63,445 bases of DNA, filler included, from Platydemus manokwari (GCA_037951405.1; 5 parts of 5 records of this genome joined end to end with filler, not necessarily neighbours in it), one strand, 5' to 3'. Positions 21,737 to 30,624 are shown, numbered from the whole stretch's first letter. Made by a program: numbers and translations. The notes: a model not told the origin generated them from the sequence alone.

Positions 21737-24700
21737 CTTGTATTGCTTAAGTAACTCGCATTGGTATTGTTCTAGCTGCATAGTCCAATCCACCCATGAA
21801 TTGAGGATATCCTGAATTTCTGATTGTCTTTGATGAATAAACAGCTCGTAGGATCCTAATTCATAATCGTTAAGTTGCTGTGCCGATTGTACTATTTGAG
21901 TGTTGATGAATCGATTTCTCAAATGAGTAGGTAATGCCTATTAAACAGAAGAATAAAAACCAAACAACAATTTAACTGACCATGTTGTCATAATATCCCA
22001 CGAAATCTAAAGCATCCTCTGAAATCAGTTCATTTAGATGGGTAGACAAAAGGTACATGATAAATAAGGCAAAAGCAGAGCCGCAAAACTTCGGGACAAA
22101 AGACGATTCCATTGTCTGGGCAGAGAAAAACATTGAATGGTAATTATTTCATAAGAATTCTTCACCTCACAAAATGTTCTTTTCAATATAAATTTGAAGT
22201 TATTTTCGTTTCGTTTCTTTCGCCTGTTTCCTAAGAGAAATATAATGAACAATAATTGATATTGTAAGCTCAATGCAACAGCAATTACTGTCAAGATAAA
22301 TTTTATATCGATGTTTTTAAGAATCACTTTGTAATCGAATTTGGTTTAAAATGCCACAAGACAAGCACATTACAGAATCGGTTAGTGGAATCAATAAATT
22401 CCCCGCATGTACTCCAACAATATGTAAATATTGGAGAAAAATTTCCAACATAAAAAAATTTCAATACAATTACCTGGGATGACAGAGATAATGAAAAAAA
22501 ATGTCCCTTCTCAATAATTGTTCAAAGAATCCAAACACTACGTAATAATAAGAAACATGGTGTTACTATTTATAAGAAACATAGCAAGTTATTTTAAGTG
22601 TTCAAGGCACGTTTTAGTAAAAAAAATGACCAAAGATATCCCATAATGCCTACAAAACATCCGATTGGATAGATATATGGCGATAATAAAAAATTAAAAG
22701 AAACACACATTAACAATTACGATAACTAAACATGCTGAATATTTTTTCAAAATGGATTTATGAAAAATTAGATCATATTATTTAATGGCCCCGGGCTATC
22801 CTAGTTGCTGATATAAAACAATTGGCTTACCCAATAAACTATCTTCACTTTAATAAAAGGTGCAAGTTGTCAAACAAATCTATAAATAAATAAAACCCAT
22901 TGGACTTGTTTGTTTTCATTATAATTTCAGATAACTTAAGAAATTAATGAAAATGTGATTGTGAGAATTTTTAAATGGATTCAATTTTTAAACATTTATT
23001 TTTATATATGATTTAGTGTCGTGACTTTTCAGTTCGTTTTCGATGTGTTTTATAAAATAGTAACGGCTAGTGTAATTATTGATCTGTAAAGACGTCAATA
23101 CGATATATTTCCAGCTCCATGAATGCTGATAGATTTTTAAAAACATTTTTTCATTTTTTCGAAGGAAAAAATGTGATTCTCGATTTTTAAATTAATTTGT
23201 TATTTCTTTTTCAACATACACTGAATGGTGTGAGATATTTCCAAGAAAGTCTAACGTATCGTTCAATAACAACCGTAGTTTGCCCGATTAAAATCATCAG
23301 TGCTCAAACATCACTCGAACCATTGATTACCTTTAATAGTACAATCGATGAAGCATGGGTAACCATAGAAGATCTGTTCTATCGTGTCGATTGTATGAGC
23401 AGCTCTATGTAATAACCATAAGAGATCTAACAGCAAGGTCAGTGTCAATAAATGACTCCAAGACAGCTGGACGAGAACTCTGTAAATGGATTCAATGGTT
23501 TCAGTATACATCATGTTTTTATCATCGTTGTTAGTATCTTTAGATGGATTCGGCCCAGGTTGATATCTGTGGTCTCGATCATTTTTGTTTCCACCGGTGG
23601 GATTTTTCAATGGTGATTCATTGGGAGGATCATAATATGACCAGATCGATTGTTCCAGCTCCTGCAAATGCCTTAAGTAATAGGGTAATCTACATTTTAT
23701 TCATAACTAAATCTTTTTCTTTTGGATTAAACGGTTTGTATTCAGGTCCATATTCAGCATCGAGACCACTTCCAACTCTTGGTTCAGGAACTGGTATGTT
23801 CAATTCGGCCCAATCTGGAAAAGGAAAAGAACTAGGAAGGGTTAGTTGAGGCGGAGATTCTGGTAATTCCCCCGTGATCTTAAGCCAAGAAAGAAAACTT
23901 TTCGTTGGATCATCTTTAGAGGTCGAACCTTCGGTTCTTTTCCTCAGTACTTCCTGGTAAATGAGTCTAGCACCTAAGTAGAATATTGAAAATACCAAGA
24001 GAACATTAAAATAACAAAACCTTCAAGCCATTCACTTTCTGACAACTTTTTCTTGGTCATTTTCATATCGTGCTGAATTCTCTTCATGAAGATTTTTGCT
24101 GTTCGATTAAAATCTTCAAGATTCCGAGTTAATTGGTGAACCATATTTCTCATTTCATATTGTGCTCTTTCTACGACAGCTTGAGAAATCAAAACCCGAG
24201 ATCTTCTCTTGGCGGCCTGAGCCGATACCTGTTCCAGTCTCTATTAAAGCGAAAGGAAATTAAATCAATAACGCAAAACAATAAGTTCGAGTTTAAAATG
24301 AAAGTGACTAACTAATTTATATTATCTATTCTTTTTCCAGAGAGGCGAAATTTAAACTTCAAAAAGAAAATCAAAGAACGTTAAATGATTTTTATCTGTT
24401 CGCTATAAGAATAAATAATATGCTGTCACTGACGAAATAATTTATCGATCATCATGCAAGTAATGACATAAATTCTAACAACTGTTTGTGATACAGTGTA
24501 TAAATTATCCATTACATCATTTTAAGAAGAATATCAAACAATGATAATAGATGAAAAAAGTAACTGTTGGCGAAATAATAGTCGACATATATTCCAATAA
24601 TTGATAATGATAAGCACGCATTATAAATATATTAATTACAGAGTAATTAGCCTCAATTTAATCTCAGTAAAATATGAATATTTCATTTATAGATTTGTTA

Positions 24701-27700: not shown

Positions 27701-30624
27701 TTCATAACTCCACAGCTGAAGGCGAAAAAAACCAGGGAAATTATTGATCTACGAAATAGTAAATTTAAATAATTAGAAATGAAACACCTGTCCCAATAGT
27801 TCCACGATCCAATATCCTTTTGAAGCACTATCAGCTTGAAAGGAATCCGAGCCTAAGTATATCAGACTTGCAGTAAGAAATTGTTCGCGATCAACCCAGG
27901 TTGGAGTAAATATAGCACTGAGCAATGATGCTCGGGCAGGTATTGTAAAATTTAGATTCGATGCCAAACGTTGATTAGAAAGCTTATATCGGTATTGTGA
28001 AATTCTTTCAACTTTCAAATCTTGAAGTTGGCGATAAGGAGGAATCTCTCTTGTATAAACGTTTAGCTTGTCAACAACTTCACTTGCCTTTTGACAATCA
28101 TATTTTGACATTTGGCTCCAGTATCCACTGTTCACACCCATAGGTATGTAAGGCCAAACTTTCAGACTTGCAGATTTCTCGCCATTTTTCACAGACGCAC
28201 TCCCAGGCGTGAGAGGAAGCCTCTGTAACAAAACATTTATTTCTCAAATAACTAAAACAAAACACACTTCTGTATTCCAAATATACGCATTTTGCAGCTC
28301 ATGATTTCCGCTAATGATGTTCGGCAGAGTGTGTATGTTGGATGAATATGTTACATGAATAAGATCTTTGAAAACCTTTTTGATTCGATGACTCAACTGA
28401 TCATTGACTGGCTTTTCAGTGAACTCCATAGTTTCGTGAAATTCATCCAATGTCAACTTTTGATTGTCTTTGTAAAGATACCATCTCAATGAGAAAATTG
28501 GTTTAGAAGAACTTGGTTTCATATGACAAATAAATGTGTCACTACGAGGCCACGCCGGGGATAATTGTAAATCCATTCTAGGTCCTAAGAAGAATATCTT
28601 CAGAGCAAATATAAGCAATATTTATTTTTTAAATCAATTATCTATATATCAGTCAGTTATACAATATTCTATACTAATATTTTCGGTTTCGATTATATAT
28701 AATGATAATATATAATCTGAATCAATAATGTTTTGTTAATTTTGATTATAAATAAGCTTTAAACCAGTAAATTTGTGTGTTAATAAAATAAAAAACTCAA
28801 AAAAATTAATGAGAAAAAAGAAAAACTTAAAAATGCAAATAAAAGAATCTCTTCTGTGAATTAAATATCTCAAAGAGTTATTACGTAAGAGGAAATCGGC
28901 AAATTATAAGATCGAAAAATATTAAATTATAAATCAAATATACTAGCACAAATGAAATTTCTTTAATATTGGATATCTATTGTAAGGATTATTATGGTTC
29001 GTGATTGAACATATAGGCTGGTTTAATAGTCATTTCTACTCATCACAATTTGATAGGATCTCGAATTTACTAATGTATAATTTACTGTTCGAAGGATTCG
29101 AATCAACTTTATTTCAGCTTATCACTGCACAGAGAACGACAATTGATTATCAATCATATAGTTAATATAGGTCTTGAGGGAAATAGAAATACTTCATCAA
29201 TAGTTTACAAGTTTATTTTATAATTTCAAATTATCCAATCAAATTCACCTCTCATGCATAAATGCATCGCACATCGCTGTGTGACATACTTATCACAAAT
29301 GGCAGTGCAGTTCTCTTTGGCACAGCAATCAAAGCAAATTTCCAATCTTGGACTTCTGCCATTATCTGCCGGACTATCAGTTGGTTTGCAGACCAATGAA
29401 TTGCTGATCATGTTGTGAGCACAATCAACAAGACAACGTTGACAATCAATTTTAGTTTTTGAACAACTAAATTCCTTTAATGATATTTACAACGATATGA
29501 GAAACCTTACTAATGCTTTTCTTCCACATAAATCCCTTCTCTTATAGCTAATTGTTCGTTTAAACTTTCTCCAAAAATTGATGGCAGCTTTCCAGCATCA
29601 ACGCACGAAACGGTCGATGGAGTCCAAGGCTTATAACCATTCGACCAAATACTATCTTGGAAAACGCGATGTATCTCTTTGTCAGTATCAGGATATTCAC
29701 CATGTTGAATGTATGTGGAACATCCATGTAAAATTGAACGGTAACCAGGAAGAGATGGGTCATTGACAACCTCGGTTGTTACATTCTAACGCAAACGATA
29801 TTGGTATCAGAAAATAGTTCGTTTTAATAAAGGCTTACGTAGTGCATTAGCATGTTCAAATTATAAAGTGGTGGCATCGGATATGGACACAGATATTTTA
29901 AGGTATCATTACTAGGATTAATTTTAAAAAGTGCATTATCATTGAATTCAGAATGATCAACGGGTTCAAAAATCGGCTGTAATGTTATTTCGCCATCGAA
30001 TTTAAGTCTCACCTGTAGAAGAAATATTGTTATATAATTTATATTTTAGTTTCTAAAAAACCTGATATCCACTTTCACGTTCCAGAATCAACACCTTATC
30101 CTGTGACAGTTTAAGAGCTTCATCAAACGATATTATGTGATGAATATCTCGCAGGTTTCGTCGATCTTCAAACCAGACATTTTTCTTATCCGGTAATTCT
30201 ATTCCGGAAATACTCATTCTAGCTACAATGAAAGTAGTAAAGAAATTGAGCACATTCAGATAAGTTGATTACATTGACAGATTCGGTTTGATGTTCCCGA
30301 GCAAGGTGACAACTCAAATTCCCCAGTGATACAAAGTGGACGACAAGCTAGGAAACAGATATATCATATCATATCATACAACTTCAGGTGTAAATATATA
30401 TGTATATATCATTTGGGTACCTGTGCATTGAATATTTGATATTTCGGTGCATTTCTTAGATATGTAATATCCTGGAGAGCATTCACTGGTGCATTCTGAT
30501 TTAAATATCAATAATCAAACTCAAATCCGATCATATAAGATAATTTTACTTGAACATTGCAGATAATTGGACTGGGCACAGCTATTCTTTTTGAAATATC
30601 CCGCTGGGCAGTTTTCATGACAAT
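21737..30624 (-). CDS. Multi-exon gene: TNFR-Cys-repeat, Cys-rich ectodomain, multi-pass membrane protein (uncharacterised); both ends incomplete
   Basis: Hand-assembled GT-AG exons: 30624-30550, 30495-30421, 30347-30273, 30222-30062, 30012-29839, 29785-29511, 29466-29249, 28584-28268, 28222-27788, 27748-27587, 27485-27320, 27266-27096, 25935-25800, 25750-25564, 24240-24021, 23973-23708, 23661-23331, 22230-22166, 22115-21981, 21937-21737. Total 3845 nt with compatible phases and no in-frame stop (~1280 aa). Hydrophobic segments: PPLVMYTVLGVLTTCLILLLIGHL; LVVFVIYLTIKAFYCFTVTTTTLLIVMVIY; LSWSHLLTLTLLLDLLWLL; FCGSAFALFIMYLLS. Confidence 0.85.
26030..26900 (-). mobile_element. Highly decayed non-LTR (LINE) reverse transcriptase remnant inside an intron
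   Basis: VKVGYLG (cf. VKYLG) near 26450 and LFQSFRSYLNYKFGSYIFGIAA (cf. LYKSLIRS.LDYGS.VY thumb motif) in ORF 26034-26228; many stops. Confidence 0.45.

Follow-up and report, generated by a model that had tools for sequence, protein, structure and literature searches.

The question raised by this locus is what kind of protein is encoded by a run of exons on the minus strand of a flatworm contig, and whether these exons belong to one gene. The window, the whole stretch of 63,445 nucleotides (nt) that was analysed, consists of five parts of the Platydemus manokwari genome (GCA_037951405.1) joined with filler. The locus lies in the piece 10201-33586, which corresponds to contig C999970 and is AT-rich, with a GC content of 22-38%. 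The host assembly is also AT-rich and is highly fragmented, its 911 Mb being distributed over 1.99 million contigs. An earlier note, made from the sequence, had proposed an orphan receptor-like protein at 21737-30624, in which TNFR-Cys modules are fused to a multi-pass body resembling those of prominin, Tweety and, loosely, DC-STAMP proteins. The locus contains a genuine gene, kept by selection, whose product is a large, predicted five-pass membrane glycoprotein with TNFR-type modules. Sequence comparison identifies it as the copy, in the genome of a free-living-type flatworm, of a gene that is found as a single-copy family across the flatworms.

The gene model comprises 20 exons in the window, running from 30624 to 21737 on the minus strand, all with AG acceptors and GT donors and with compatible phases (coordinates were checked by script). 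The joined exons amount to 1281 codons with no stop, so that the approximately 1280 residues of the earlier note were reproduced. Together with three exons on a second contig of the same genome, C510997, described below, the 23 exons form a single open frame of 1426 codons that ends at a TGA stop and contains no frameshifts. Intron sizes are bimodal, mostly 39-101 nt with four at 0.66-1.3 kb. Single exons or database orthologues served as queries in all remote searches; exons were joined in local scripts only, for translation, hydropathy and family-profile scoring. The exons, with predicted transmembrane segments denoted TM1 to TM5, are as follows.

30550-30624, minus strand: exon 1 by our numbering (the gene's true first exon being missing), four-Cys TNFR-type module, phase 1-1; acceptor tttag, donor gtaaaa.
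30421-30495, minus strand: exon 2, second four-Cys TNFR-type module, phase 1-1; TNFR_c6 E 6.6e-4, model positions 18-39.
30273-30347, minus strand: exon 3, third four-Cys TNFR-type module, phase 1-1; TNFR_c6 E 2.7e-5, model positions 17-39.
30222-30062, 30012-29839 and 29785-29511, minus strand: exons 4-6, ectodomain, with GT-AG sites, compatible phases and collinear tblastn matches of orthologues.
29249-29466, minus strand: exon 7, 14-Cys cluster with many invariant Cys columns in the family alignment.
28584-28268, 28222-27788, 27748-27587 and 27485-27320, minus strand: exons 8-11, ectodomain, gapless against the contig of a related species.
27096-27266, minus strand: exon 12, juxtamembrane stretch and TM1 (LVMYTVLGVLTTCLILLLI) followed by TRK; hydropathy 2.57; family profile positions 12-50.
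25800-25935, minus strand: exon 13, inner loop 1 and TM2 with an invariant intramembrane Lys; family profile positions 91-125.
25750-25564, 24240-24021 and 23973-23708, minus strand: exons 14-16, outer loop 1, with long helices and the sequons NST and NRT.
23331-23661, minus strand: exon 17, end of outer loop 1, TM3 (LSWSHLLTLTLLLDLLWLL, with an invariant Asp) and the inner motif HRxxHTxDTxE; profile E 1.8e-20.
22166-22230, minus strand: exon 18, basic inner loop 2 (G-NRRKKRNENNFKFILKRTFCE); acceptor tttctcttag before GA, phase 1.
21981-22115, minus strand: exon 19, TM4 and the conserved motif LDxxGYYDN; profile E 1.1e-12; 40-44% identity to orthologues.
21737-21937, minus strand: exon 20, first half of outer loop 2, helical, with a conserved Cys; profile E 5.8e-16; donor gtgtta, phase 0; the last exon in the window.

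The relatives of this protein are flatworm proteins. When exon 9 was the query in a full HMMER scan against 1.84 billion representative proteins, ten proteins were returned, and all those that carry an organism name are from flatworms (Echinostoma, Paragonimus, Clonorchis/Opisthorchis and Protopolystoma). With the C-terminal 796 residues of the Clonorchis protein as query, a word search identified 18 members from trematodes (including Schistosoma mansoni Smp_159780, Fasciola, Calicophoron and Trichobilharzia) and cestodes (Sparganum, Taenia, Hymenolepis and Mesocestoides), every one of them hypothetical or named just for a TNFR-Cys or EGF domain. In tblastn, ten orthologues matched the window in order from 30646 to 21737, with match boundaries that coincide with those of the modelled exons. 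The collinear proteins come from Clonorchis, Opisthorchis, Fasciola, Sparganum, Taenia, Hymenolepis and Mesocestoides, their alignments covering 30628 to 21737, and collinear orthologues exist in at least 12 flatworm species. A profile built from 13 orthologue bodies matches exons 12-20 in order, with E values of 4e-9, 5e-19 and 1e-12 for exons 14-16 and of 2.5e-168 for the joined membrane body (local script). The protein is no closer to trematodes than to cestodes (35-45% identity), as expected for a flatworm that belongs to none of the parasitic groups sequenced. Exon 9 and the C-terminal block, the two parts tested, each correspond to one locus in the genome itself. No relative outside the flatworms was found in searches of very large protein libraries, and a profile word search for body-only relatives of 438-1393 residues, a range that would include prominins and TTYHs, yielded two flatworm fragments only. 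The full-length collinear orthologues indicate that this is one gene and that the combination of ectodomain and membrane body is conserved across flatworms; the fusion proposed by the earlier note was thus upheld, with phases kept over the long introns.

The second line of evidence is the pattern of change between closely related sequences. Exon 9 has one 91%-identical relative in a word-indexed protein library. It sits on a 1.8-kb genomic contig from another organism's sequencing run (Logan SRR33002330) that is collinear with window positions 28587-27092. Exons 8-12 align to this contig with zero gaps and 70-84% nucleotide identity, whereas the introns between and around them show 20-47% identity and many gaps. 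Across the 415 codons compared, 209 changes are synonymous only and 41 are non-synonymous; the relative has no stops and shares 90% amino acid identity. Gapless exons, diverged introns and the synonymous excess confirm these five exons with their boundaries, and the gene is under strong purifying selection.

The N-terminal part of the protein is disulphide-rich, with 29 Cys residues. The first three exons are 75 nt long and of phase 1-1, and each encodes one C-x3-C-x9-10-C-x7-C unit. Two of these exons match the second half of the TNFR_c6 model (PF00020) with 24.9 and 20.5 bits, below the gathering score of 29.4 because each exon corresponds to half a domain. The Taenia orthologue has the same three Cys modules at its very N-terminus and scores 32.5 bits, above that threshold; in the Taenia solium protein the counterpart of exon 1 is the first Cys module, and exon 3 is 57-60% identical to its orthologous counterparts. 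The N-terminal modules are accordingly TNFR-type, as the earlier note had read them. The dense Cys cluster it had pointed out is exon 7, the best-conserved segment of the protein, with 58-66% identity to trematode and cestode orthologues over 73-77 residues. Exons 4-6 have no Pfam match and no known domain, and a Pfam search of all long open frames and the orthologues returned TNFR_c6 only, plus EGF_CA in the trematode orthologues. When the ectodomain profile was compared with PDB sequences, weak TNFR-type matches to poxvirus CrmE (E 0.62) and OPG (E 6.6) were obtained over its first 50 positions; a third match, TRUB1 (E 2.3, profile positions 444-489), is apparently due to chance.

Five hydrophobic segments are located at residues 743-765, 782-811, 1099-1121, 1174-1195 and 1365-1390. 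Basic stretches are found after TM1 (TRK), between TM3 and TM4 (NRRKKRN) and after TM5 (KRFSVIRQKR). None of the eight N-x-S/T sequons falls outside the ectodomain and the two large loops, and one recurs throughout the family, as YNAS in seven of eight orthologues, YNVS in the eighth and YNET in the window protein. Outer loop 2 also has an invariant Cys. From the hydrophobic segments, their basic flanks and the placement of sequons and Cys we infer a five-TM topology with the N-terminus outside and the C-terminus inside. The outer loops would then measure approximately 290 and 170 residues (314 and 216 in Clonorchis), the basic inner loop 2 approximately 50 residues and the basic C-terminal tail 36 residues. 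TM2 contains an invariant Lys (YLCLKSAYTF in the family, YLTIKAFYCF in the window) and TM3 an invariant Asp (LLLDxxWL); conserved His residues mark either end of TM3 and also the end of TM4. The Lys and Asp, with the conserved His, could make up a buried salt bridge or else bind an ion or a ligand.

Most elements of the membrane layout described in the earlier note, namely TM1 in exon 12, the short loop, TM2 in exon 13, the GNRRKKRN loop and TM4 in exon 19, were recovered. Its TM3, however, had to be relocated.

22231-22287, minus strand: the segment previously taken as TM3; pyrimidine-rich end of intron 17, non-coding in the supported model.

In all orthologues the hydrophobic segment ahead of the basic loop is that of exon 17, LGWVHVLGAALLLDALWLI in Clonorchis and LSWSHLLTLTLLLDLLWLL in the window, followed by HRVLHTVDTAER..YG...ID.T.E-G and then by the basic loop. 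Use of the acceptor at 22230 brings back exactly the spacing seen in orthologues (...TIK-G-NRRKKRN versus ...TVE-G-LRRRLLQ), with an invariant Gly and 23 residues to a conserved Met, and gives a family-profile score of 549.5 bits, compared with 524.6 and 523.5 bits for the 22287 acceptor or an extra exon at 22411-22328. Both of these candidates were rejected. The 22287 acceptor, which would add the segment IAVALSLQYQLLFIIFLL (22287-22231), has no counterpart in 16 orthologues and scores 25 bits worse; the 84-nt exon 22411-22328 also lacks an orthologue counterpart and scores 25-26 bits worse. Inclusion of 22287-22231 would flip the conserved Cys and sequon of outer loop 2 into the cytoplasm.

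Intron 12 contains a further candidate exon.

26776-26853, minus strand: candidate cassette exon in intron 12, 78 nt, phase 1-1, with AG/GT sites and an open frame.

It encodes a Cys-rich 26-residue insert (DQICF...GECH) that would lengthen inner loop 1. It adds 13 bits on the family profile, by gap filling only, with no residue-level similarity to orthologues; this segment is a possible, unverified cassette exon.

The positions 21737-30624 do not hold the whole gene. Exon 1 starts in phase 1, so at least one upstream exon, with the start codon and signal peptide, is missing, and 30625-33586 yielded no convincing candidate for it. The Clonorchis protein GAA52907.1 starts with a signal-like peptide approximately 230 residues ahead of the modules. 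At the other end, exon 20 is followed in the family profile by approximately 190 further positions that have no match anywhere in the window. The remaining exons were located by searching the genome itself with an alignment of orthologue C-termini. The C-terminal block (HC...CP...YNxS...TM5 LWN..G..W...ESD tail) has its sole match in the genome at G000:C510997:3767-4313, with E values of 1e-12 and 2e-4.

C510997, 3767-3939: exon 21, VPIPTHCK...CPVSMIIPQLFT; starts in phase 0, matching the end of exon 20.
C510997, 3995-4159: exon 22, YNET... and then TM5 IIHCLFGYISAIILWNTVGATVWFYV.
C510997, 4214-4313: exon 23, RFSVIRQKRIYETD..., stop TGA.

By homology and phase, the gene is incomplete in the window and its last three exons, with TM5, the tail and the stop, are on this second contig. 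The sequence just past exon 20 is occupied by a repeat.

21134-21700, no strand assigned: repeat in intron 20 resembling a miniature inverted-repeat transposable element (MITE), approximately 565 bp, found by DNA search of the genome itself.

This repeat has at least 80 scored copies (of 1808 candidates) with 78-90% identity in the same genome, and its 50-nt terminal inverted repeats (21135-21184 and 21647-21696) are 84% complementary; its copy number and termini identify it as a MITE. Its open frames can be mistaken for exons, and one of them includes a TM-like stretch. The segments 21551-21399 and 21364-21215 ('MAEAAGDVKF...', with the TM-like IAYYLPLIVLTVIVFCCAF), which had been aligned by eye to the orthologue C-terminus as candidate 3' exons, were rejected: they lie inside the high-copy MITE and contain an in-frame TAA. 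A second, longer copy of the MITE is located on C510997 at 2011-3164, approximately 600 bp upstream of the last three exons. This MITE is the only sequence that the two contigs share, so intron 20 either exceeds 15 kb and is rich in transposons or spans a break in the assembly; a break or misjoin of the fragmented assembly within this transposon-rich intron is probable. Further down, on the minus strand at 15254-16186, is a degenerate Mos1/mariner-type transposase in several frames (HTH_48 47.7 bits against a cut-off of 24.1, and a weak DDE_3 match). At the opposite end of the contig, 33500-33586 consists of simple (ATT/TAA)n repeats, the probable reason for the contig ending at this point.

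The resemblance of the body to prominins was considered next to the published definition of that family (PMC11405016), which combines homology to known, annotated prominins with a layout of five TM helices, two large loops outside and two small ones inside. The three layout features are predicted for the window protein from hydropathy, the positive-inside rule and the placement of sequons and Cys; homology was not detected. Prominin (PF05478), Tweety (PF04906) and DC_STAMP (PF07782) have no match in the window exons at E<=1 and no hmmscan match in the 13 orthologue bodies at E<=10, and the likeness to DC-STAMP suggested by the earlier note therefore found no support. The 815-position family body profile has zero matches at E<=10 to all PDB sequences, a set that presumably holds the cryo-electron microscopy entries of TTYH, for example 7P5J (local copy unchecked). 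A first AlphaFold2 run with 13 sequences was unusable (mean predicted local distance difference test score (pLDDT) 41, predicted template-modelling score (pTM) 0.18), and its Foldseek matches were meaningless. A second run, with more orthologues and with fragment rows from the window and C510997, reached a mean pLDDT of 58 and a pTM of 0.36, with helical cores at 70-90; prediction was limited by the shallow alignment. In this orthologue model TM2, TM4 and TM5 run on into the outer loops as long helices, interrupted by disordered inserts. Fold searches with the mid-confidence model (pLDDT 58) returned generic coiled coils and hairpins only, with no TTYH or prominin. The prominin/Tweety-like body of the earlier note is supported at the level of predicted topology, with five TM segments and two large helical outer loops in the corrected model; no sequence similarity was detected.

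Public databases already hold the family as hypothetical trematode and cestode proteins, with no function described in the literature searched. A search by family locus tags returned no functional description of any member; Smp_159780 has one incidental mention, in a list of polymerase chain reactions on untranslated regions. No characterised family could be assigned, in agreement with the earlier note, and no functionally characterised orthologue was found. The term orphan has to be qualified, since orthologues have database entries. Several source names in the family are misleading ('Guanylate cyclase domain-containing', 'Hemicentin 1', 'DEDD_Tnp_IS110' and 'Vezatin domain-containing', among entries P0002, P0021, P0033, P0035, P0004 and P0013). 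None of these domains was found by current Pfam on P0002, P0021, P0035 or the C-terminal body of P0033 (residues 760-1569), and the UniRef label 'Vezatin domain-containing protein' on an E. caproni fragment was not reproduced. Some trematode entries look like fusions with an upstream gene. In P0004 and P0013 the family signal peptide is internal, at residues 642-660 and 865-883, and these two are probably fused in this way.

We consider it fairly probable that the locus encodes a pan-flatworm five-TM protein with its N-terminus outside, a TNFR-type tip and a prominin/TTYH-like organisation; this estimate draws mostly on the evidence for the gene, the family and the topology. The mature protein would have at least 1426 residues, in the order unseen signal peptide, three TNFR-type four-Cys modules and a disulphide-rich ectodomain of approximately 650 residues in which no known domain was recognised. 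The predicted body continues with TM1, a short inner loop, TM2, a glycosylated outer loop of approximately 290 residues, TM3, the basic loop, TM4, a loop of approximately 170 residues, TM5 and the tail. Such a protein would be a plasma-membrane glycoprotein whose TNFR-type modules and conserved Cys cluster might bind an extracellular protein partner, and its five-helix body with two long helical loops might act as a rigid stalk or platform, possibly oligomeric like TTYH. With no death domain or TRAF motif and a tail of just 36 residues, it would not signal in the manner of a classical TNFR. Several points weigh against this description. Homology and splice-site logic are the basis for the junction of exons 17 and 18, for the cassette exon and for the link to C510997. 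A search of 30625-33586 for a signal-peptide exon (ATG, hydrophobic stretch, phase-1 GT donor) gave only unconvincing candidates. The AlphaFold2 model is of middling confidence, so the packing of the body is provisional, and the prominin/TTYH analogy lacks sequence or fold support; the resemblance is topological only, and the evidence on fold kinship leans negative. The TNFR-type modules could be structural rather than ligand-binding; unrelated proteins, too, contain such Cys modules as structural spacers. Finally, any function is pure inference because no family member has been characterised.

Two of the alternatives deny that there is one intact gene. Two merged neighbours, a single-pass TNFR-like receptor ending after TM1 and a four-pass protein following a 1.2-kb intron, would account for the likeness of TM1 and TRK to the stop-transfer end of a type I receptor and for the length of introns 12, 14 and 17 (1.1-1.3 kb); the earlier note had likewise named the 1.2-1.3 kb introns as the place of a possible break. 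Some database entries are split in this way, such as the Echinostoma caproni fragments P0002 and P0035, but these derive from short contigs of 25-36 kb. Moreover, the phases agree across every long intron (1/1, 0/0 and 1/1), there is no in-frame stop between TM1 and the donor, and at least 12 independently annotated orthologues hold both parts in one protein, including cestode proteins of 1570-1715 residues; a merger is very improbable. A decaying pseudogene or an assembly artefact might be suspected in an assembly of so many contigs, with the gene cut at both of its ends in this contig and with transposon debris in intron 20 and further down. However, the 23 exons are free of stops and frameshifts, selection relative to the sister species is strong, and the missing 3' exons are intact on the other contig with a matching phase and a proper stop. 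The probability of decay or artefact is close to negligible.

The other alternatives concern the nature of the protein. It might be a second, unconventional flatworm TNF/neurotrophin receptor for a TNF-like ligand, which in parasites could be host TNF. The TNFR_c6 modules are conserved from free-living to parasitic flatworms, and a census of flatworm TNF signalling reported a single NGFR-like TNFR per species, with four cysteine-rich domains (CRDs), one TM and a death domain, and TNF ligands from free-living species only (PMC7519573); the window protein thus appears not to be counted there. Against this, most of the conserved ectodomain is unrelated to TNFRs and the modules amount to approximately 1.5 CRDs. 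No death domain was matched by Pfam in the window or the orthologues, and no TRAF motif, (P/S/A/T)x(Q/E)E, was seen by eye in the tail. That the protein serves as a TNF or neurotrophin receptor is improbable. The body might instead be that of a true, very divergent prominin/Tweety member that acquired a giant TNFR-bearing ectodomain and serves to organise membrane curvature or protrusions in association with cholesterol or lipid. The three predicted topological features, the modelled continuity of the loop helices with the TM helices and the conserved Cys and sequon of outer loop 2 point in this direction. Loop and tail sizes parallel those of human prominin-1. The homology searches point the other way, being empty for 13 members even at E<=10 and for the family profile against PDB sequences. 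The outer-leaflet Trp that is near-universal in prominin TM5 (PMC11405016) also has no clear equivalent here, the invariant TM5 Trp residues of the family lying mid-helix and towards the inner end. Membership of the prominin/Tweety superfamily is unlikely. A bolder proposal is a new receptor class, in which TNFR-type ligand-binding modules and a conserved Cys-knot ectodomain are mounted on a prominin/TTYH-like pentaspan body, ligand binding is coupled to membrane or lipid organisation instead of death-domain or TRAF signalling, and the protein serves as a second TNF/neurotrophin-type sensor of the parasite surface. This last element is suggested by the single copy and the conservation from free-living flatworms to schistosomes and tapeworms; we regard the proposal as speculative and doubtful.

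If the favoured five-TM architecture is correct, every flatworm group sampled has a conserved single-copy large membrane glycoprotein that is predicted to be surface-exposed, and its carriers include the agents of schistosomiasis, liver-fluke disease and cysticercosis. A phylum-restricted protein with such exposure is the kind of target that parasitologists seek. Its modules would be the only flatworm TNFR-type modules besides those of the single described NGFR-like TNFR, which bears on how parasites that lack TNF respond to host TNF. A free-living orthologue would make in situ hybridisation and RNA interference practical. The corrected gene model also illustrates that AT-rich introns and MITEs can mimic transmembrane exons.

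The window protein can be compared with three known systems. With the TNFR superfamily it shares N-terminal Cys-rich modules that match TNFR_c6. Unlike these type I single-pass receptors, it has five hydrophobic segments, as do all its orthologues; it carries three half-modules in place of the four CRDs of flatworm TNFRs, has neither death domain nor TRAF motif, and more than 90% of its length is unrelated. With prominin-1/CD133 and TTYH1-3 it shares the predicted five TM segments, the outer N-terminus and inner C-terminus, a short cytoplasmic tail, two short inner loops and two large outer loops, predicted here to be helical, glycosylated and disulphide-bearing. It differs from them in having no detectable sequence similarity and no fold match with the available model. 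Its N-terminal ectodomain has approximately 740 residues, and that of prominin well under 100. We know of no intramembrane Lys/Asp pair like that of this family in prominins. The closest system is its own orthogroup, which includes Smp_159780, GAA52907.1/KAG5441784.1 (Clonorchis sinensis), TGZ61387.1 (Opisthorchis felineus), Fasciola gigantica P0021, TsM_000802700 (Taenia solium) and A0A0R3SGJ4 (Hymenolepis diminuta). Within this group the window protein is the most compact, with a shorter inner loop 1 and without the variable middle of outer loop 2 (profile positions 626-690), whereas trematode entries have 230-1200 extra N-terminal residues including an EGF_CA domain. The three TNFR-type modules, the Cys cluster, the ectodomain, the five TM segments, both helical loops and the tail motif are common to the orthogroup, as are the invariant TM2 Lys and TM3 Asp and the motifs HRxxHTxDTxE, GYYDN and LWN.

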